From Lepidodermella squamata (Eukaryota; Animalia; Gastrotricha), in NCBI GenBank assembly GCA_047495785.1, contig JBLDXI010000029.1:124001-188000 (forward strand): a stretch of 64,000 nt of DNA. The letters run 5' to 3'. The translations under genes were made by a program, and so were the position numbers. The notes beneath the pieces are model-generated. The model did not search any database. It was not told where the DNA came from and was given only the letters and a program-made list of their open reading frames with translations. Positions within the stretch are counted from its first letter, which is position 1. Each line of letters begins with the position of its first letter. Below are positions 1 to 14,684 of this stretch, in pieces.

Positions 1-120
1 AACTGTGGGGGTGGGTGATTTCCATCTTTCGCCTGCCTTCGCCCTCCTCAAAACCGTTTTTACGGTATAGATGCTTAATCGAGAGGAGGACTAAATAAAA
101 CCATTATTATTATTATTATT

Positions 121-3100
121 ATGATATTTTTCAGACGCGCTAGACGACGATGATGACAACGACGGCATTTCTGATGCCGACGAAAAGAAGGATTCGGATG
201 GTGATGGCGTGCCAGGTAAGCGCACTTGGAACGGCTGGTTCGGGAGCGCGAGTTGCATCATTGTGTTTCTTTGTTCGCAGATTATCTCGACGACGATGAT
301 GATAACGATGGCATCCCAGATTCGCAAGACAAGGATGATGATGGCGATGGCATTCCGGACGACCAGGAAGACAGCGATGGCGACGGTGTGCCAGGTTAGT
401 TCCGGGCCGTGATGTGCAACTGCGCGTTGTGGGGAGGGCACCGTTGGGTATTGCGTTGCGAAAGGCTGAAATGTGCGGGGTTGCGAGCTTTCGAGCTTAG
501 CCCAGCTAGGTTCGGGGATTGTCGGTTGGGTTTCACTTCCGGGCTGGCATGCGTTTGGAATAGGTTGGCGGTAGTTCCCGGGTTGCGGTATTGAGGTTCG
601 CTGGGAATCTCGTGCGTGCATGGCGCAGGTGGCGCTGGGTTTCGAGCTTCGAACTCTTGTTGAGCTTCGAATTGACGCTTTCAATGATATTTTTCAGACG
701 CGCTAGACGACGATGATGACAACGACGGCATTTCTGATGCCGACGAAAAGAAGGATTCGGATGGTGATGGCGTGCCAGGTAAGCGCACTTGGAACGGCTG
801 GTTCGGGAGCGCGAGTTGCATCATTGTGTTTCTTTGTTCGCAGATTATCTCGACGACGATGATGATAACGATGGCATCCCAGATTCGCAAGACAACGATG
901 ATGATGGCGATGGCATTCCGGACGACCAGGAAGACAGCGATGGCGACGGTGTGCCAGGTTAGTTCCGGGCGGTGATGTGCAACTGCGCGTTGTGGGGAGG
1001 GCACCGTTGGGTATTGCGTTGCGAAAGGCTGAAATGTGCGCGGTTGTGAGCTTTCGAGCTTAGCCCAGCTAGGTTCGGGGATTGTCGGTTGGGTTTCACT
1101 TCCGGGCTGGCATGCGTTTGGAATAGGTTGGCGGTAGTTCCCGGGTTGCGGTATTGAGGTTCGCTGGGAATCTCGTGCGTGCATGGCGCAGGTGGCGCTG
1201 GGTTTCGAGCTTCGAATTGACGCTTTCAATGATATTTTTCAGACGCGCTAGACGACGATGATGACAACGACGGCATTTCTGATGCCGACGAAAAGAAGGA
1301 TTCGGATGGTGATGGCGTGCCAGGTAAGCGCACTTGGAACGGCTGGTTCGGGAGCGCGAGTTGCATCATTGTGTTTCTTTGTTCGCAGATTATCTCGACG
1401 ACGATGATGATAACGATGGCATCCCAGATTCGCAAGACAACGATGATGATGGCGATGGCATTCCGGACGACCAGGAAGACAGCGATGGCGACGGTGTGCC
1501 AGGTTAGTTCCGGGCCGTGATGTGCAACTGCGCGTTGTGGGGAGGGCACCGTTGGGTATTGCGTTGCGAAGGGCTGAAATGTGCGGGGTTGCGAGCTTTC
1601 GAGCTTAGCCCAGCTAGGTTCGGGGATTGTCGGTTGGGTTTCACTTCCGGGCTGGCATGCGTTTGGAATAGGTTGGCGGTAGTTCCCGGGTTGCGGGATT
1701 GAGGTTCGCTGGGAATCTCGTGCGTGCATGGCGCAGGTGGCGCTGGGTTTCGAGCTTCGAATTGACGCTTTCAATGATATTTTTCAGACGCGCTAGACGA
1801 CGATGATGACAACGACGGCATTTCTGATGCCGACGAAAAGAAGGATTCGGATGGTGATGGCGTGCCAGGTAAGCGCACTTGGAACGGCTGGTTCGGGAGC
1901 GCGAGTTGCATCATTGTGTTTCTTTGTTCGCAGATTATCTCGACGACGATGATGATAACGATGGCATCCCAGATTCGCAAGACAACGATGATGATGGCGA
2001 TGGCATTCCGGACGACCAGGAAGACAGCGATGGCGACGGTGTGCCAGGTTAGTTCCGGGCCGTGATGTGCAACTGCGCGTTGTGGGGAGGGCACCGTTGG
2101 GTATTGCGTTGCGAAAGGCTGAAATGTGCGGGGTTGCGAGCTTTCGAGCTTAGCCCAGCTAGGTTCGGGGATTGTCGGTTGGGTTTCACTTCCGGGCTGG
2201 CATGCGTTTGGAATAGGTTGGCGGTAGTTCCCGGGTTGCGGGATTGAGGTTCGCTGGGAATCTCGTGCGTGCATGGCGCAGGTGGCGCTGGGTTTCGAGC
2301 TTCGAATTGACGCTTTCAATGATATTTTTCAGACGCGCTAGACGACGATGATGACAACGACGGCATTTCTGATGCCGACGAAAAGAAGGATTCGGATGGT
2401 GATGGCGTGCCAGGTAAGCGCACTTGGAACGGCTGGTTCGGGAGCGCGAGTTGCATCATTGTGTTTCTTTGTTCGCAGATTATCTCGACGACGATGATGA
2501 TAACGATGGCATCCCAGATTCGCAAGACAACGATGATGATGGCGATGGCATTCCGGACGACCAGGAAGACAGCGATGGCGACGGTGTGCCAGGTTAGTTC
2601 CGGGCCGTGATGTGCAACTGCGCGTTGTGGGGAGGGCACCGTTGGGTATTGCGTTGCGAAGGGCTGAAATGTGCGGGGTTGCGAGCTTTCGAGCTTAGCC
2701 CAGCTAGGTTCGGGGATTGTCGGTTGGGTTTCACTTCCGGGCTGGCATGCGTTTGGAATAGGTTGGCGGTAGTTCCCGGGTTGCGGTATTGAGGTTCGCT
2801 GGGAATCTCGTGCGTGCATGGCGCAGGTGGCGCTGGGTTTCGAGCTTCGAATTCTTGTTGAGCTTCGAATTGACGCTTTCAATGATATTTTTCAGACGCG
2901 CTAGACGACGATGATGACAACGACGGCATTTCTGATGCCGACGAAAAGAAGGATTCGGATGGTGATGGCGTGCCAGGTAAGCGCACTTGGAACGGCTGGT
3001 TCGGGAGCGCGAGTTGCATCATTGTGTTTCTTTGTTCGCAGATTATCTCGACGACGATGATGATAACGATGGCATCCCAGATTCGCAAGACAACGATGAT

Positions 3101-3674
3101 GATGGCGATGGCATTCCGGACGACCAGGAAGACAGCGATGGCGACGGTGTGCCAGGTTAGTTCCGGGCGGTGATGTGCAACTGCGCGTTGTGGGGAGGGC
3201 ACCGTTGGGTATTGCGTTGCGAAAGGCTGAAATGTGCGGGGTTGCGAGCTTTCGAGCTTAGCCCAGCTAGGTTCGGGGATTGTCGGTTGGGTTTCACTTC
3301 CGGGCTGGCATGCGTTTGGAATAGGTTGGCGGTAGTTCCCGGGTTGCGGTATTGAGGTTCGCTGGGAATCTCGTGCGTGCATGGCGCAGGTGGCGCTGGG
3401 TTTCGAGCTTCGAATTCTTGTTGAGCTTCGAATTGACGCTTTCAATGATATTTTTCAGACGCGCTAGACGACGATGATGACAACGACGGCATTTCTGATG
3501 CCGACGAAAAGAAGGATTCGGATGGTGATGGCGTGCCAGGTAAGCGCACTTGGAACGGCTGGTTCGGGAGCGCGAGTTGCATCATTGTGTTTCTTTGTTC
3601 GCAGATTATCTCGACGACGATGATGATAACGATGGCATCCCAGATTCGCAAGACAACGATGATGATGGCGATGG
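121..3674 (+). repeat. Tandem array of ~6.4 units (545/563 bp); each unit = exon A (81 nt) + 65-nt intron + exon B (114 nt) + 285/303-nt intron
   Basis: Exon A starts at 135, 698, 1243, 1788, 2333, 2896, 3459 (periods 563,545,545,545,563,563). Units are near-identical; the length difference is an 18-bp indel between two GAGCTTCGAA direct repeats. Confidence 0.97.
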
Positions 3675-6600
3675 AAAATCTGACTTTGCTGGTGATACTG
3701 ATGGTGACGGCATCGCTGGTAAGTCTCTCTTCGGATTTTTCTCAACTTTTCTCCGATCCACGTACTTTGTTTCGCTGGGTTCTTTGAGGCATTTGTAGTG
3801 CAAGTGGTTGCAGCTAAAACATTGAAATACCTGTTCAAGGTTTTGCAGTTAAAATTTGCTGTGTGACGGTTAAGGGTGACGTTGCCGCGTTCACCTGTTA
3901 TCATACATGCTATCCAAGTTATTCCATTTATAATTGAATTCAAAGAAATATTCGGTCAGGATAATTCTAATAGGAGTCATCCACTTAGTCATGAACTTTC
4001 GCACGCATTTTCGTTTCAACGATTATTTTTTGTTTTCCAGATATTCATGATAATGATGACGATAACGACGGCGTTTTCGGTAATTACATTCCGCTTTTGA
4101 TGTTTCCTCTGTGCCTTTACCTCAGTTTTATTTATCTTTTATAATACTCGTTGAACCGAGCATATTATATATTTCTGATTTGTATTCAGATTCAGTTGAC
4201 CATGACGACGATAACGATGGCATTGCTGATTCTCAAGAACCCATCGATAGTGATTTTGACGGCATTCCCGGTATTTTGCCAGGCTATTTATATTTCACTA
4301 ACTGATAAAATATTCAATTTTTCAACAAGACTTCATCGACGACGATGATGATAACGATGGCATCCCAGGTAGGCTAATTAACGTAAGAGGAGATCATAAT
4401 TCAGCTGAAAATTCCACTCAGATTCCGAAGACGAAGACGACGACGGCGACGGCATTCCGGACGCTGACGAGCGCCTCGATTCGGATGGCGATGGCATCCC
4501 AGGTTTGAAATCGGGCTCAGTGCTTTGTTAGGCTTGCCGCTTCAACTTTAGTTACCGCTTTATAGACTACCTTGATCCAGATGACGATAATGACGGAATG
4601 CCAGGTATGTATGCGCTTTTTTAGTTCGCTTGATCATATCATCCTCTTCAGCCTCTGAACATTTAATATATCGCCCATATGCTTTCAGACTCGAATGACG
4701 TCGACGATGACGGTGACGGAGTTTCGGACAAGGATGAGGTCATCGGACCTGATTCGGATAACGACGGAATTCCAGGTATGAGAAAATTAATCAGTAACTG
4801 ATAAACATTTAGGCGTGGTTTTCGCTTTTATGATTAACGAGACCGATGATAAAACGGGGCGCTTCGCCATAAAATCTAGCTCACTCTACTCACATAAGCA
4901 CGCAAATATTGGTGCGCTGCTTTTTTGCGCGAGCGTGCGCGCACTGCTATAATATTGAATACGCGTTGATGCGAGCGAGCACTGAATGCGCGCGCCGGCC
5001 AACGCTAATCGAAACAGCGCGCTTCCAACTATATATGTATCCCTCTTACAGACGCCGCTGATCTGGACGCTGATGCCGACGGTATCCCGGATGAGCTCGA
5101 GATAGGTGTGTTTCCTATATTCACTATGCCGTATACTATTACTCAAAATTATTACTGCTGGCTCTACGAGAAAAAACGAGCCGAACTCAACCAGAGTGGC
5201 TCATGATAAAATATGACTGAAAGGCACTTGTGGTTGTCGGACCGCAGACAGTTATTCTGATGTTATTGGCGCCTAATCAATATCATAAGCAGTTGTTTAT
5301 TGTTGTTCTCGCTCTACTTCTATTTGTTCGCGGGGCAGATACCGACGGCGACGGTACGCCGGACTACCTCGACGAAGACGATGATGGCGACGGCGTGCCA
5401 GGTTTGAGCTTAAATATACCTTTCATTTCAGAAAATTGTAGCAATTTCTTATAATTTGAAGATTGGCAAGACAATGACGACGATGGCGACGGTATTCCGG
5501 ACGAGAAAGAAAAACTTGGAGGCCCCCCAGCAATCGATCTGATTGCTGATTCCGACGGCGATGGAATACCCGACGCCATGGTTACAAAAAACTTCGGGTT
5601 TGATTTTAAAAAATTTGAATTTTCGCGTTTTAAGGATGATGATGATGACAATGATGGAATTCCGGACTATTTGGATTTGGACGACAACAACAACGGCATT
5701 GTCGACCGGAGCGAAAAGAAACTGGCCGACTCTGATGGTGATGGCATCCCAGGTACGAAATACGCCGGCGCCAGAATTTCATGCTTATTTCGTGTCGTTT
5801 TGCCTGCCTAATTAGATAGTAGTTGTTTTTACATCGTTTAGTTCATGCTGTAATCATAGAGTTTAGAGTATTCAGATGAAATCACTTTTAGGAATTAGGA
5901 GATGCATGCAGTGTTGTTTGTTGTTCAATGGTTTTATTTGCTATATACGTCTAGATATCTTGGATGCGGATGATGACAATGATGGCATACCAGGTTAATA
6001 ATAATTCCTTTTTCGCTCACATTTTCCTCAACTGAGTTTTGCCAACTAAAAACTAAATCGCGGAATTTCGCGAGCTGAAATCCCGTCAGCTATTACTAAA
6101 ATCAATCAATGACAAATGCGAAAAGTGATTGCGAGGAAAACGAGGGTAAATTAACTCGAAGCCTATGCCAACGCCCGTCTTTTCCTTCACGTATCCTGGA
6201 AATTCCTTGAAATTAATTAGACAGCATCGTTAAGAACTTTTCTATTTAGCTAGCGCAACCTATACATAATAATATAAAAGCCCTCGAAGAACCGTTTAAA
6301 TGTGCACCGTTGCTGAATGCTACCTTCGTTAAAAGATTCCTCGCACGACAACACTCGAGATCGTATTTGAAATGTTGTGAATAGAGTCAAATTGGCACAG
6401 ATTCTCCCGCACATTGCACAGTTTAATTGCCTAGACATCGAGCAACATTTTATGCTCGGTAAATGGAATCAAAGCCGAAAATATAGTCTGGGTGCCTTTA
6501 TGCCTCGTCTCCGCGACAATAGCTGAATTTTTGAAACTCCAAGATCCGACGTTTTTAATTGGCAAAATTCAGAAATTTGGAAATTGCGTTGCTAATTGAT

Positions 6601-9600
6601 GTTTTTTGTATCATTTGCATCTTGCTCGCTGCAGACGAGCTGGACACAGATGATGACAACGATGGCATCCCGGATCACCTGGATGACGAAAGGAATGACG
6701 GCCACCAGCGAGCTCGTCTCAAGGATTCGGACGGGGATGGAATACCTGACTGGCTCGATCAGGACGATGATAATGACGGCATCAGGGATGACATCGATCC
6801 AGACGATCATACACCGGCACCACGCGGTCTGAAATTGGCCAATTTGAACCACGACCTCGACAATGATGGCTTCCCAGATGACCGTTAGATTGCTTTACAT
6901 GAGCTAAATCTGCAAGCATTATGAGCCCTTTTATTTCAGAGGATGACGATGACGATAACGACGGAATCATCGATAGCTACGATAGGGACAACAACGGCAA
7001 TGGAGTGCCTGATGATGTGAGACGGCAGTGTGCTGAATGAGTTTTCCTTTATTGAAAATTATTGATTTCGCAGATCGAACAGCGTGATTCCGATGGCGAC
7101 GGTGAGCCTGACGTCACGGACTTGGATGACGACAACGACGGCATCCCCGACTACCTGGATGAGGACTGTGACGGCGACGGCATTGAGGACCACTTGCGTG
7201 ACACTGATGGCGACGGCATTCCGGATTACTTGTGAGTGTTGCTACTTATAGGTCTCAATCGATTTTGATTGCGTTCTTTCAGGGATGCCGATGCAAATGG
7301 TGATGGTCGGAAGGACATGCTGAAAGACATCGACCGTGACGGCATTGTTGACGCTTTGGTAGGGAAATGGCTTATAGCGTTGCACGTCTTCGAATGACTG
7401 TGTCTCTTCCTATCTAAATTAGGATCCTGATGATGACAACGACGGAGTGCCAGATTACTTGGACTCGGATGCCAACGGCAACGGTATTCCTGATGTTATC
7501 GAAGTCAAAGATACAGATGGAGACGGTATCGCTGGTAAGTCCCGAGTTCGAAAAGTTAATTGAAATTTTTAAGAAGATTAGGAATTACGAGAAATGTTTC
7601 AAGCAAGGTTCTAAATGCTTGCTTCAAATGACTGATGAAACGCAGCATTAAGTGTAGATCACCGCTTTATTTGAAAAAAAACTCGATGAAGGGAAATAAG
7701 GTGCTGCCAACACTTTTCGGAATTTGTTTAAAAACAATCGGTGAAGTATGACAAAAATGTTATTCTCACACAGACTGGATCGACGATGATGACGATAACG
7801 ATGGCATCCCCGATTTCGAAGATGTCGACGCCAACGGCGACGGCATTGTCGATAAGTTGAAGGACGGCGACGGTGATGGTGTGCCTGATCTTTACGATAC
7901 CGATGCTGACAACTTCGGTGAGTGATCCATTGAGTGGTCATTGCGAGACGAATTGCTAATGTTTTGTACTCATGTCTCAGGCGGTTTTGATAAGCTGAAG
8001 GACTCGGATGGCGACGGCACCCCGGACTTTTTGGATGGAGATGATGGCATCCCAGATCGTCTGGATGACGACGATGACGGTGATGGCGTTGCCGATTCAA
8101 GTGAGTTTATTTGGCGCTTCCTATTCGTTTCAGAAGCTTTATGTCAATGATTAGGCGAGGATGCTAATGGAGACGGCCGGCCTGATTTGTTAGCTGCGAT
8201 TAACAAGGACATTTCTGAACTACCGTCTGCCATCAAGAACCGCGATACTGATTCAGATGGTGTGCCAGACTGGCTGGATGAGGACGATGACGGCGACGGC
8301 GTGCCGGACTCGTATGATTCCGATGTCGACGGAGACGGCCGGCCCGAGCGCATCTTCCGCGGCGGCGTCCTCATCGCGAAGCTAGGCGAATCGCGCGTTC
8401 TGCCTGGCGGTCTGCGTGACATTGACTTCGACGGCCTGCCAGATGCTTACGATGACGATGATGACAATGACGGCGTGCCGGATATCCATGACCTTGACCA
8501 GGACGGTAACGGCATCCTGGATGAGGTCGAGCGGCGTCAGCGCCCTCACACCGGCATCAATCGTACACAGGCTGGTTTGCCGCGCCAGAAGCAATACACG
8601 TTTGCGCAGCAAGATCGCGACTTTGATAACGACGGCATCCCAGGTACAAATATTTTTCAAATTAGTGGCTCTCGGCTAAAGACTACATTCAAAATTCTGG
8701 ACCACCTATGATTTATTCATAAAAATTGATTTTTCAGATTACCTGGATAACGATGATGATAACGATGGCATCATTGTAAGTTGACATTTCATCGGGTCTT
8801 TGGATTGAAATCATTTTGTTGCTCCTATAGGATCTTTTGGACGATGATGACGATAACAACGGCATCGTTGACCTGAGTGAGGACTGGGATGGCGACGGTT
8901 TGCCCAACTTCATGGACAAGGACATGGATAGCAATGGCTGGTTCGATTACTACCTTGACACTGACCAAGACAGCGTGCCTGACTACCTCGATTTCGATGA
9001 CGATGACGATGGCGTAAGTTCACAAGGCCATCATCACCTTGAAGAAGCCGACTCTATTTACTTTACAGATCCCTGACTACCTGGACCTCGATGGTAATGG
9101 GGATTATATTCCCGATATCTTGCAAGACCTTGATCGCGATGGAATCCCTGGTAAGCTCCAGCCACCTGATTTCCGGGTGTTTTGTGTTACATATATATTT
9201 GATTTAAGACCATCTCGACTTGGATGCTGACGGTAATCGTATCATGGACTCGAACGAGGACCATGACCATGACGGCATTCCCGACTACTGGGACAACGAC
9301 GACGACAACGACGGAATCCCAGATTACCTCGACCCGGATGATGACAACGATGGCGTGCTCGACGTGAATGAAGACGCGGACAACGACGGCGTGCCAGATT
9401 ACGTCGACTGGGAAATCAACGGATTCCGCTCGCCGCGTCACTACAGAGACACGGACCAGGACGGCCTGCCCGACTTGTTCGATGACGACGACGACAATGA
9501 CGGAATTCCGGACGCGAAGGACCCGGATGCGAATGGCGACAAGATTCTCGACCGCAACCAGGACGAAGACCAGGACGGTATTCCGGACTATGTCGACGAC

Positions 9601-10665
9601 GATGCGAACGGAGACCACGTTCCTGATTCATTTGAAATCGGTAATCCTGTTAGATTTCATCTCCACTTATTGTCTCATCTTTTTGTTTCAGATACTGACA
9701 GGGATGGTATCCCCAACTGGCTGGACCTCGACGACCTGGACGGAGATGGCCTGCGTGATTGGATCGACGAAGACGCTGATGGAAACGGCATCAACGATGC
9801 TGAAGAACGGTTTGCTGCCGCGGCCAAGTTGGCGCTTGAAATGGGCGAAATCGACTCGGACTGCGACGGCATTCCAGATTCGGAGGATGAAGATGACGAT
9901 AACGACGGCGTGCCTGATGCCAAGGACGACGACGATGATGGCGATGGCGTTCCGGACGAATTCGACAAGGGCGAGCAGAACAGTTTGTTCGCTGGATTGG
10001 TCGGAAAACGCGACGAAAGCCATCACGAAAGCCATCACGGTCATCACGATCACGGTCACGGTCACGGTCATGAAGAAAGCGATGAAGAGGAGTCACACGA
10101 TCATGACGAGCACAGTGAAGAGGACGAGTACGATCTGCTAGATGTGCTGCACGCGTGGATCAACGGCGAAGTCGATCCGAAGAACCTCGAATCTGCTGAA
10201 CCTGAGGCTGAGGAAGCTGAGGATGGTGGGGATGAGGAAAAGGGCGAGTGTGAAGGTGACGACTGCGAGGCGGCCGAATCAAAGTCGTTGTTGCAGGAGG
10301 CGTACGACAGCGTTTTAGGCCGGTTGAATGCGCTGCGGGAGCGTTTCGAGGTGCCGGAGGATGCGCCGAAACACCCGCACGAGCTGAAGCAGGAAATCGA
10401 CCTGCCTGAACTCATTTCCACTATAGGCTCGCGCCTGAAGCGTCAGTTTGTCAACTGGCGCGAGGGCAAGAAGATCTGCCGCGTGATAGCAGGCAGCCGG
10501 CCGCGAGCTCAAGCCGCAGCCAAGGTCACCAAGCCCAAGATCGGCCAAAAGCCGCCAGTGAAAGTCGTCCCGAAGCCCGCCCAACAGCAGCAACAACAAG
10601 CGAAGCCGGTAGTACAGCGACAACAACCAAAGCAGCATCAATTGAACAAGCAGATTAAGAATTGA
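135..10665 (+). CDS. Large Asp-rich, probably Ca2+-binding protein of thrombospondin type-3-like (DxDxDGxxD / DDDNDGIPD) repeats; about 38 exons; 5' end lies upstream of the window
   Basis: Exons bounded by AG/GT, mostly phase 1 (e.g. 135-215, 281-394, 4041-4079, 4190-4270, last exon ~9691-10665), splice in frame into repeats such as [14 protein letters not shown] and DSDGDGVPD. The C-terminus has His-rich, Glu-rich and K/Q/P-rich blocks; TGA at 10663-10665. Confidence 0.85.
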
Positions 10666-13497: not shown

Positions 13498-14684
13498 ATG
13501 CTGACCTCTCATCGAATTTTGTTTGCATCGTGCCTTCTCGCCGTCGCCAGCGCCGTGCCGTCGTCGATCGAAGCCGAGCTGTCGGACGACAACGGCGACG
13601 ACTGCGTGGTGCACCAAGAGCCGTGCCTCGGCGCCGACGGCCAGCTCGACTCGTGCACGTACCTGCACTGCGACGGCGACGACGCGAATGCCGAGGCCGT
13701 GATCGCGAAACGCGCGACCGGCTTCATGCGCGTCGGCAAGCGAACCGTCTCCGACAACTCGGGCATCGATGCAGCGGCCGATGACAGCAACAGCAACGAC
13801 GACAGCAGCAGTGACAATGAGGTCGAGGCGGCCGACGACATGTCGGTGGACGCCTCGAAGCGCGCCACCGGGTTCATGCGCGTCGGCCGCCGGCGCCGGT
13901 CAGCTGCTGCCATGATTGTGCCAGCTTTCAAACGCAGGTAAGACCAAGTCATTTTTTGTCATTTCAGGCGACCAAAGAGAAAATGTTAAGGTTTACAAGA
14001 AAAACTAATCCACAGGCGATTCAGTGCATGCAATTTCGGCTTAAATTTTTACATTCAGGAAACTATTTTCAAAGTGCGGTTCGCCAGTTTTTTCTACAAT
14101 TATTCGATTTTTCAGATTTTTACATGATATCTTCGAAATTCCAATTTAATAATTTTTTGTACGAAATTTCATTCGAAACTTTACCTTGAGGACATGTGTT
14201 TAAGACAAATTTTCTCTTGATTTTGATCCATTAGGCGGGACAAAATTTGAACGCCCTCCCTCGTACACAATTGTTCGGAGCCGGGTTTCATTTTTTATTG
14301 CGAATTACCTACCAATTATTTAAAAATAAGTCGCACTCAACGCGGAATATAACGCCTCGTTTCCGCAACCGCGCCATTGAAAATTTCCCGAAACACCTGG
14401 CACCTGGAATACTACCTAATAAGTGCTTTAAGTTCAAAGCTAGTCAATACTTATATGCGAGACGTATTTGAATTTTAAGAAAAAAAACTGAACAATTTTG
14501 GCTTTTTTTACGGCGTAGCAACTTGATTAACTTTTTACTGATTTTGTTTTTGTTTTTCATGAACAGCAAATCGGTTGTGATGCTGATCGAGGATTCGGCC
14601 AACAATGGCAATAGCAACAAGCGCCAGTCGAGCACCCGGGCGTCGCGGGCCTCCGGCTTCATGCGGGTCGGCCGCCGGCGTTGA
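13498..14684 (+). CDS. FxRIamide-family neuropeptide precursor (ATGFMRVamide x2, ASGFMRVamide x1); exons 13498-13937 and 14567-14684
   Basis: Signal peptide MLTSHRILFASCLLAVASA; KR-ATGFMRV-GKR, KR-ATGFMRV-GRRRR and R-ASGFMRV-GRRR-stop; acidic spacers; a phase-2 GT-AG intron joins the exons in frame. Confidence 0.9.

Follow-up and report, generated by a model that had tools for sequence, protein, structure and literature searches.

The question raised by this locus of the gastrotrich Lepidodermella squamata is whether a very long series of DxDxDG repeats belongs to a thrombospondin, to some other characterised protein or to a gene of its own kind. In animals, repeats of this type (type 3 repeats) have been regarded as one element of a unit that defines thrombospondins, the others being EGF domains and a C-terminal lectin domain; in the thrombospondin superfamily, tandem EGF-like domains precede the repeats and an L-type lectin-like domain, TSP_C, follows them (PMC6526912). 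The window analysed here is a stretch of 64,000 nucleotides (contig JBLDXI010000029.1, positions 124,001 to 188,000, forward strand), for which a preliminary description had reported well over 1,000 residues of these repeats in about 38 short exons. Our splice model agrees closely: 39 exons with GT–AG borders lie between 135 and 10665 and encode about 1,723 amino acids. These are only the last exons of a gene that starts approximately 29.5 kb upstream of the window and occupies around 40 kb of the plus strand (G000:C29, about 94,537–134,665, equivalent to −29,463 to 10,665 of the window). The full model has 136 exons, with 135 spliceosomal introns, totalling 14,292 nt and 4,763 amino acids, and the neighbours of the gene on its contig of 3.9 Mb are ordinary animal genes.

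The composition of the predicted protein is extreme. Aspartate makes up 41.8% of the model and, as described for its 3′ part, Cys is very rare, with only 5 in 4,763 residues (2 among the repeats, the other 3 in the tail). About 337 distinct DxDxDG loops of 12–13 residues follow one another with a period of 11–14 residues and the consensus D-x-D-(G/N)-D-G-(I/V)-P-D-x-x-(D/E), and 127 of the 136 exons start in phase 1. Genome-wide, all matches to the repeat are confined to this one locus, and the C-terminal tail is single copy. The exon chain is a prediction, save for two splice junctions that are supported by an orthologue, and the split at 8525/8610 is uncertain. The splice scoring was trained on Asp-rich exons; it divides the non-repetitive tail wrongly and makes exon 1 too short. 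The last exon was set at 9692–10665, and exon 1 was placed by manual reading (L004:537–638). We used the joined 4,763-residue model for counting only, and ran family scans, searches and folding exon by exon.

Comparison with a second species (L021, L020) provides the main evidence that the gene is real. In the diverged 3′ exons, which are the part covered by this comparison, 193 of 215 residues of the repeat region are kept and 51% of the conserved codons differ between the two species; for conserved Asp codons, the differing fraction is 0.51 compared with 0.49 expected at saturation. Because the residues of the repeats are conserved while synonymous sites are saturated, we conclude that the gene is real and that it is under purifying selection. 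A Nei–Gojobori pS of more than 0.75 was discarded as an artefact of two-fold Asp codons, and the direct count of codon identity was used instead. A 42-residue block near the C-terminus is identical at 37 of 42 positions, with 18 synonymous and 5 non-synonymous codon differences. The orthologue lacks two of the predicted introns, which confirms the corresponding junctions. We favour, as the probable reading, one real, old and strongly constrained animal gene that encodes a chain of about 340 Cys-free loops and whose product is likely to be a secreted Ca2+-binding polyanion.

Most of the length of the predicted protein comes from a tandem array of 52 copies of a 563-bp two-exon unit (about 3,380 residues of the model), a copy number that, for a 29-kb array at 99.65% identity, is only as reliable as the assembly. 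That identity is the mean for 44 of the 52 units, which form a mosaic of 13 variants, and the array is either young or homogenised. Tandem Repeats Finder missed it, as the period of 563 bp exceeds the limit of 500 for the tool, and we used an exact-motif script. All 104 array exons have open frames and strong splice sites; 11 sites vary among the units, 2 of them exonic compared with about 4 expected by length. The window contains the tail of the array (1–3718), and the boundary is marked by the final unit, whose second exon is diverged over the 3′ half. Since every exon of the array is in phase 1, changes in copy number or exon skipping can alter the length of the product with the frame intact; a form without the array is likewise in frame (about 1,383 amino acids, 31% Asp). 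The array is split once by a young, 5′-truncated LINE-like insertion of about 2.64 kb (from L002:7485), which lies within an array intron, ends at its 3′ side a few bases 5′ of the acceptor tract and raises the spacing of units from 563 to 3,202 bp. Searched against the genome, the insertion gives at least 48 matches, many of them 97–99% identical and with differing 5′ truncations. Being in sense orientation, the element could truncate transcripts. Features within the window are collected in Table 1; the introns of the diverged exons span 51–641 bp, and these exons carry about 77 loops with unique linkers.

Table 1. Features of the repeat gene within the window (positions are those of the window)
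Feature	Position	Strand	Basis or remark
LINE-like insertion, 3′ end with (ATT)n tail	1–120	+	Unit consensus stops at position 556 of the unit and is taken up again at 121
Last 7 of 52 two-exon units (four of 563 bp, three of 545 bp)	121–3718	+	Exact-motif mapping
Array exon A, 81 nt, phase 1 at both ends, 2 loops	135–215	+	Acceptor tttttcag, donor gtaagc
Further copies of exon A (starts)	698, 1243, 1788, 2333, 2896, 3459	+	
Array exon B, 114 nt, phase 1 at both ends, 3 loops	281–394	+	Acceptor gttcgcag, donor gttagt
Further copies of exon B (starts)	844, 1389, 1934, 2479, 3042, 3605	+	
24 diverged repeat exons, 34–432 nt, mostly phase 1	4041–9640	+	Splice model
Diverged exons 1–12 (starts)	4041, 4196, 4330, 4422, 4566, 4689, 5052, 5339, 5462, 5635, 5955, 6635	+	
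Diverged exons 13–24 (starts)	6940, 7074, 7283, 7423, 7774, 7981, 8155, 8610, 8738, 8831, 9069, 9209	+	
Predicted intron	8776–8830	+	Missing from orthologous L021 DNA
Second predicted intron	9014–9068	+	Missing from orthologue; joined peptide contiguous in L021
Last exon: final loops, then non-repetitive C-terminal module	9692–10665	+	
His-rich cluster (H, G, E, D, S)	10018–10077	+	Found in orthologue too
Conserved block (DEYDL...HAW.NGE.DPK), short predicted helix	10123–10191	+	
Two Cys close together, acidic stretch	10243–10269	+	Similar pair in orthologue
42-residue near-invariant block, predicted amphipathic helix, one conserved Cys	10381–10506	+	
Basic Lys/Pro/Gln-rich C-terminal tail	10507–10662	+	

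The repeat type itself is known (Pfam TSP_3 and TSP3_bac) and is abundant in bacterial surface proteins. TSP_3 scores 30–31 bits on 7074–7229 (7062–7232) and 24.9 bits on 9211–9639, and its cut-off is passed by one exon; TSP3_bac scores 25.1 bits on exon A (cut-off of 25), 21.5 on exon B and 19–21.5 on other exons, so that a number of exons do not reach the Pfam thresholds. Other weak Pfam matches are all to families with calcium loops (EF-hand, FG-GAP and the anthrax PA calcium domain). EF-hand_5 reaches 14.8 bits against a cut-off of 25.9, with the loop alone matching, and an EF-hand helix–loop–helix was rejected because loops spaced every 11–14 residues leave no room for flanking helices. 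In the PDB, the only sequence matches are thrombospondin-2 and COMP, in both cases in their type 3 repeats. An exhaustive HMMER search gave 3,612 matches, led by T9SS and OmpA proteins with TSP_3/TSP3_bac repeats (E down to 4.5e-168, 40–50% identity), whereas animal thrombospondins matched only at E of about 1e-3. The ESM Atlas gave only leads below 0.85, to archaeal and bacterial TSP3 clusters, and a six-frame genome search with PF02412 and PF05735 gave no match, equally so in control genomes, and was not taken as a sign that these domains are absent.

Neither the last exon, nor the downstream open reading frames, nor any other exon tested has a Pfam match to TSP_C, in line with the initial description of a repeat protein without this domain. 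The last exon ends in a stop codon at 10663–10665, and the open reading frames 3′ of it have no Pfam match. No exon tested matches EGF in Pfam, and the 5 Cys of the model are fewer than the 6 needed for one EGF domain. The disulfide-forming Cys pairs of type 3 repeats are absent, with only 2 Cys in the repeat region, and the upstream DNA contains repeat exons only, with no EGF-coding exons, before minus-strand zinc-finger genes. An identity as thrombospondin or COMP was rejected on these three grounds (no paired Cys, no EGF domain, no TSP_C domain), and at the sequence level the proposal of a stand-alone, Cys-free array of calcium loops held. The 5′ exons, which the preliminary description had proposed to recover, added more repeats and a hydrophobic N-terminus, with no match to any characterised protein. 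Pfam likewise gave no match to OmpA or T9SS CHU_C modules on the exons tested, nor to calsequestrin, thioredoxin or HRC at E up to 1.

The non-repetitive C-terminal module is, as far as sequence searches reach, the lineage-restricted part of the protein. Rich in His, it combines three predicted helices and about three Cys with a basic tail; the last 60 residues have a computed pI of about 12. It has one relative among billions of proteins, P0049 (Logan run SRR21279729), which has in common the His cluster, the DEYDL...HAW block, the 42-residue Cys block and the basic tail. Word searches gave no other protein, the PDB gave no match, and the best 150 of the 3,612 HMMER matches include no further protein with the module. 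AlphaFold2 on a two-sequence alignment of the module gave a pLDDT of 49, with three helices as a weak hint. The suggestion that the gene represents an undescribed family is supported only in part: the module has a single relative, but the repeats are of a known type and have stand-alone eukaryotic relatives.

At the N-terminus, the best candidate for exon 1 has an ATG, a 16-residue hydrophobic core and a phase 0 junction to exon 2. It is acidic before the core and has four Lys within nine residues after it, and could suit a cleaved signal peptide or, equally, a reverse signal anchor; in the latter case the polyanion would be cytosolic. Spliced-leader trans-splicing may be involved, and the true start of the transcript may not be that of the model. 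Secretion of the predicted protein is likely. The Cys are clustered in the tail and conserved, which we counted toward the secretory route.

Thrombospondins and COMP (PF02412; 1UX6, 1YO8/2RHP, 3FBY) have the same DxDxDGxxDxxD loop, including DDDNDG(I/V)PD, and the gastrotrich protein differs from them in having no paired Cys, EGF, TSP_C lectin or coiled-coil. A thrombospondin subunit has about 13 type 3 loops; here, around 340 loops recur every 11–14 residues without the Cys-containing spacers of thrombospondin. Bacterial TSP3-repeat surface proteins (PF18884) are likewise Cys-free, with tightly packed loops and very long arrays, but contain 13–20% Asp compared with 42%, whereas the gastrotrich gene is eukaryotic, with 135 introns, no OmpA, CHU_C or other bacterial module, and its own C-terminal module. 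Stand-alone repeat proteins that appear similar by sequence are present in other eukaryotic assemblies: P0087 (GCA_051168835.1), P0105, P0110, P0070 and P0006 are arrays of the same loops with 55–60% repeat identity. They are shorter (458–1,907 amino acids, about 22–24% Asp), differ in non-repeat parts and exon structure, and lack the gastrotrich C-terminal module. P0087 is a spliced animal gene, P0087 and P0105 have signal-peptide-like starts, and in P0105 the loops are flanked on either side by a thioredoxin-like domain, with weak matches of these domains to the ER proteins ERdj5 and ERp44. The tail of P0087 gave a weak compositional match of basic Lys/Pro/Gln segments (E of 0.008 in one comparison), which we did not accept as homology.

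Other acidic proteins offer looser parallels. Aspein/Asprich, dentin phosphophoryn, calsequestrin and HRC have in common with the gastrotrich protein an extreme acidity and a presumed high-capacity, low-affinity binding of calcium, and HRC also has a His-rich cluster beside acidic repeats. These polyanions use poly-Asp, phospho-Ser or acidic surfaces, unlike the ordered loops with invariant Gly and Pro found here, and the exons tested show no sequence or Pfam relation to them. For the array, the closest parallel is human LPA, in which kringle IV-2 is a frame-preserving two-exon unit of about 5.5 kb in tens of near-identical tandem copies. In both genes a tandem two-exon unit sets protein length by its copy number; the unit is 563 bp and encodes calcium loops here, compared with about 5.5 kb encoding kringles in LPA. 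The locus is a clear case of such a frame-neutral exon-unit array.

Calcium binding by the loops is predicted from motif similarity only. By analogy with the crystal structures of thrombospondin and COMP, each loop would bind about one Ca2+ through Asp 1, 3, 5, 9 and 12; the chain would be extended and polyanionic when free of calcium and would become a compact, calcium-filled wire once loaded, and one molecule could hold some hundreds of Ca2+. More weakly, we infer that the protein may enter the secretory pathway and act outside the cell or in a lumen, that its role may be that of a high-capacity, low-affinity calcium binder or a calcium-set matrix, and that the C-terminal module, with its His cluster, helices, approximately three Cys and basic tail, may serve assembly or anchoring. 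A bolder reading, which we hold only tentatively, is that there is an unrecognised animal class of stand-alone mega-polyanions, each with hundreds of Cys-free loops, whose length is tuned in this lineage by a copy-variable unit and which assemble through the module into a calcium-set extracellular material; this would be the densest calcium binder yet described from an animal. If true, candidate materials include a gel, an adhesive or release agent, an egg coat or a calcium reservoir. The loop is used alone, without disulfides, about 340 times, with residues nearly constant despite saturated silent sites. The protein offers a natural test of whether type 3 loops can fold and bind calcium when no cysteines staple them, and, in an animal group that has been little sampled, it is a candidate for a calcium material outside the cell or in a lumen.

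Among the alternatives, the one that deserves most attention, with a modest probability, is that only the diverged exons contribute to the functional product, a protein of about 1,400 residues, and that the array is a recent and possibly miscounted expansion whose exons are mostly or always skipped. Skipping would keep the frame, and units that are 99.65% identical carry no independent evidence of selection; the exonic share of variable sites (2 of 11), the LINE within one array intron and the derivation of the second-species conservation from the diverged 3′ exons only also suit this reading. Against it, every array exon has kept an open frame and strong splice sites, the mosaic of 13 variants and the internal 545/563-bp variant indicate an array that was resolved and not collapsed or inflated, and the array loops are of the same kind as those of the conserved exons. 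Should the RNA turn out to lack the array, there would still be a conserved loop protein of about 1,400 residues, uncharacterised and less striking. Gain of the repeat array from bacteria by horizontal transfer, followed by the acquisition of introns and expansion, is very improbable. By far the strongest matches are bacterial, but the likeness is limited to a short, compositionally extreme motif that is repeated many times, so that scores add up without implying descent. There is no bacterial flanking domain, and the many spliceosomal introns, the ordinary animal neighbours, an age sufficient for synonymous saturation between two species and the presence of the same loops in the spliced animal gene P0087 all argue against transfer.

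Two further readings concern where the protein acts. It would be fairly unlikely for it to be a luminal calcium store of the ER/SR or another organelle, with a function like that of calsequestrin or the histidine-rich calcium-binding protein (HRC), rather than a matrix component. The combination of extreme acidity with a His-rich cluster, and the thioredoxin-like context of the loops in P0105, are in keeping with such a store, but a KDEL-type retrieval signal was not found at the C-terminus of the model sequence, the exons tested have no Pfam match to calsequestrin, thioredoxin or HRC, and a size of 0.5 MDa with a basic tail is better suited to a matrix or secretion product. An intracellular polyanion, soluble or anchored on the cytosolic face of a membrane (by a reverse anchor or through a downstream start) and acting as a scaffold or cation buffer, is unlikely. 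No basic residue precedes the hydrophobic segment and four Lys follow it within nine residues, a charge difference that favours a cytosolic C-terminal side; moreover, exon 1 is a candidate only, and trans-splicing may define another 5′ end. However, such loops are known from extracellular and cell-surface proteins, which work at millimolar calcium, the Cys of the tail are conserved and relatives have classical signal peptides, all of which speak against this reading. Beyond the outermost repeat exons, the DNA 5′ of the gene carries zinc-finger genes on the minus strand, and the neighbours include an ITPK1-like protein whose best relative is only 52% identical.

Between positions 135 and 10665 on the forward strand, each Asp-rich open segment of the window contains DxDxDG motifs and is flanked by AG and GT; the repeat exons noticed in a preliminary description of this DNA are real. 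A splice model based on dynamic programming, with codon log-odds and simple splice-site scores, gives 39 exons and approximately 1,723 codons within the window, in line with the 38 or so exons and well over 1,000 residues first counted. The reading frame closes with a stop codon at 10663–10665, directly followed by AT-rich sequence. The window corresponds to G000:C29:124001–188000 in a genome of 121 Mb and 151 contigs, and we examined the 50 kb upstream of it for further exons. The 5′ exons whose recovery the preliminary description had proposed were obtained, with repeat exons running back to −28,830 (negative positions are upstream of the window start). Beyond that point, the 50 kb contains no more repeat exons, solely C2H2 zinc-finger genes on the minus strand and remnants of transposons, which places the 5′ end of the gene at about −29,500. 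The zinc-finger genes form a cluster with poly-Gln tracts directly upstream of the giant gene (L005, C29:84001–94000, minus strand).

The best candidate for exon 1 (L004:537–638, in an upstream stretch of the same contig) opens with an ATG, after which come a hydrophobic core of 16 residues and a GT donor in phase 0; it joins the acceptor at L004:1170/1171 in frame. The full predicted model comprises 136 exons, 127 of which start in phase 1, with a coding sequence of 14,292 nt and a product of 4,763 amino acids (507 kDa, net charge near −1,970). The predicted product is 41.8% Asp, 11.8% Gly and 6.1% Pro, and contains 5 Cys. The joined model was used for counts alone; homology searches and folding were carried out exon by exon.

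An exhaustive HMMER search found two short proteins from a single Logan assembly (SRR21279729): P0097, which is 86% identical to part of the exon at 9209–9640, and P0049, which corresponds to the C-terminal module. The contigs that encode them, L021 and L020, represent the orthologous DNA in another species. Amino acids are identical at 193 of 215 aligned repeat codons, and the codons differ at 98 of those 193; conserved Asp residues use the other codon in the orthologue in 38 of 75 cases (0.51, versus 0.49 expected under independent codon choice). Silent sites are therefore saturated, and the protein sequence has been held. The non-motif linkers are also held between the species; selection acts on the specific sequence and not merely on acidity, and the gene is real and under strong constraint. 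L021 lacks the introns predicted at 8776–8830 and 9014–9068 and reads straight across the predicted junctions, thus confirming two splice junctions. Intron turnover in the repeat gene is high, with two introns found in the window alone and four in the orthologue alone (L021 and L020 together), all at loop boundaries.

The model contains an array in which a unit of two exons occurs 52 times, accounting for 3,380 of the 4,763 predicted residues. Exons A and B, together with two introns (65 and 303 bp), make up a 563-bp unit; 45 units lie upstream of the window in perfect register and 7 more at 121–3718, three of these last being 545 bp in length. Mean identity among the 44 full units is 99.65%, with only 11 variable sites, and the 13 unit variants occur in mosaic order with no higher-order period, which is the look of a resolved array, not a collapsed one. 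The copy number of 52 depends on the assembly. All array exons are frame-neutral, and an array-free form of 1,383 amino acids is therefore possible. Antisense ORFs of 182–197 amino acids extend across every unit (91–3445 on the minus strand of the window, and all units upstream); these are Asp codons read backwards as runs of Ile and Val, and are almost certainly not genes.

The array is interrupted once, by a 2.64-kb LINE-like insertion in an intron, a few bases upstream of the acceptor tract. By eye, the insertion consists of the end of an endonuclease domain and then reverse-transcriptase remnants, with (ATT)n at its end. The genome contains at least 48 matches to it, many of them 97–99% identical and with varied 5′ truncations, as expected of a young LINE; its sequence thus suggests recent retrotransposition.

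Features of the repeat gene; L002 is a stretch of the same contig upstream of the window
Feature	Position	Strand	Size	Content
LINE-like element	L002:7485–10000 and window 1–120	sense	2.64 kb	5′-truncated, (ATT)n tail
C-terminal module	window, about 9990–10662			
Array exon A			81 nt	2 loops
Array exon B			114 nt	3 loops

After removal of overlapping matches, the product has approximately 337 loops at a spacing of 11–14 residues (mode 13). Their consensus is D1 (100%), D3 (99%), G/N4, D5 (96%), G6 (100%), I/V7, P8 (63%), D9 (81%) and D/E12 (93%). Single exons reach the Pfam cut-off of 25 bits for two of the profiles named in the preliminary description, TSP_3 with 30–31 bits and TSP3_bac with 25.1 bits. 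The scores of other exons lie between 14 and 25 bits, and the remaining weak matches are all to families with calcium loops, namely EF-hand, FG-GAP and the anthrax PA calcium domain. Sequence matches in the PDB are confined to type 3 repeats, those of thrombospondin-2 and of COMP. An HMMER search with the last exon in 1.84 billion representative proteins gave 3,612 matches, of which 167 had E values below 1e-30. The highest-ranking matches are proteins of 1,000–7,800 residues, and those that were checked are bacterial T9SS (CHU_C) or OmpA-anchored proteins with TSP_3/TSP3_bac repeats.

Several relatives are eukaryote-like. The gene for P0087 has 16 exons and lies on a chromosome of 88.6 Mb (NCBI assembly GCA_051168835.1); the start of the protein resembles a signal peptide. 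In P0105 (458 amino acids, UniParc UPI0006985C84), Cys-free loops lie between two thioredoxin-like domains with weak matches to ERdj5 and ERp44; P0105 is possibly a calcium protein of the ER lumen with a different architecture. P0006 is a 1,907-residue single ORF (L022:10001–15724; ENA ERZ28675667 ctg711, a 4.3-Mb contig) with 63 loops in triple-loop groups separated by Glu-rich linkers, a pattern that it has in common with two further relatives, P0070 and P0110. Within the present genome, all 59 repeat matches fall in the locus of the giant gene.

The C-terminal module is single copy in the genome and has no relative in Pfam or the PDB, in keeping with the earlier view that the protein is distinct from characterised ones such as thrombospondin or COMP. 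Its only relative is P0049; word searches over proteins of 138–849 amino acids returned no other, nor did the best 150 of the 3,612 HMMER matches include another match to the tail. The two are 54% identical overall, and both contain a cluster of His residues, a DEYDL...HAW block, two Cys in close proximity and a Lys/Pro/Gln tail (computed pI ~12). A 42-residue block common to both species has 37 identities and a conserved Cys, with 18 synonymous versus 5 non-synonymous codon changes. AlphaFold2 predicted three helices and nothing more, and not confidently (pLDDT 49).

The thrombospondin superfamily is defined by type 3 repeats, EGF domains, a lectin domain and Cys pairs (PMC6526912). Here the EGF domains, lectin domain and Cys pairs (three of the four features) are absent, which bears out the initial report of very few Cys and no lectin-like C-terminal domain. 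By analogy, the gene product would work much as thrombospondin type 3 repeats and bacterial TSP3 arrays do. The bacterial proteins have anchoring modules and prokaryotic gene structure, and the giant gene has neither. Recent horizontal transfer of the repeat gene finds no support, as only the repeated motif shows similarity and the gene itself is of old origin with many introns. The proposal of an undescribed family holds in part. The calcium loop itself is known; the novelty lies in the scale and Asp content of the protein, its stand-alone architecture in an animal, the array of exon units and a C-terminal module restricted to the lineage.

The established structures of thrombospondin and COMP are the basis for expecting the loops to bind Ca2+. 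By comparison with them, each loop would bind approximately one Ca2+ through Asp 1, 3, 5, 9 and 12, giving several hundred ions per molecule, and calcium would turn an extended polyanion into a compact wire. A secretory route is more tentatively indicated by the hydrophobic N terminus, the conserved Cys of the tail, the signal-peptide-like starts of P0087 and P0105, and the fact that characterised proteins with such loops are all extracellular. The hydrophobic segment of exon 1 also fits a reverse signal anchor, with which the charge flanks of the candidate exon are compatible. Candidate roles include a calcium reservoir, a calcium-set gel, an agent of adhesion or release, a material of the egg or cuticle, and mineral control. 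The combination of a basic tail on a polyanion with a His cluster would suit self-assembly or anchoring.

Downstream of the gene, an ORF of 147 amino acids (13498–13941, forward strand) without a Pfam match has a signal-peptide-like start and two short ...GFMRVG copies flanked by dibasic sites. Its sequence resembles that of a precursor for an amidated neuropeptide, RFamide-like but ending in Val.
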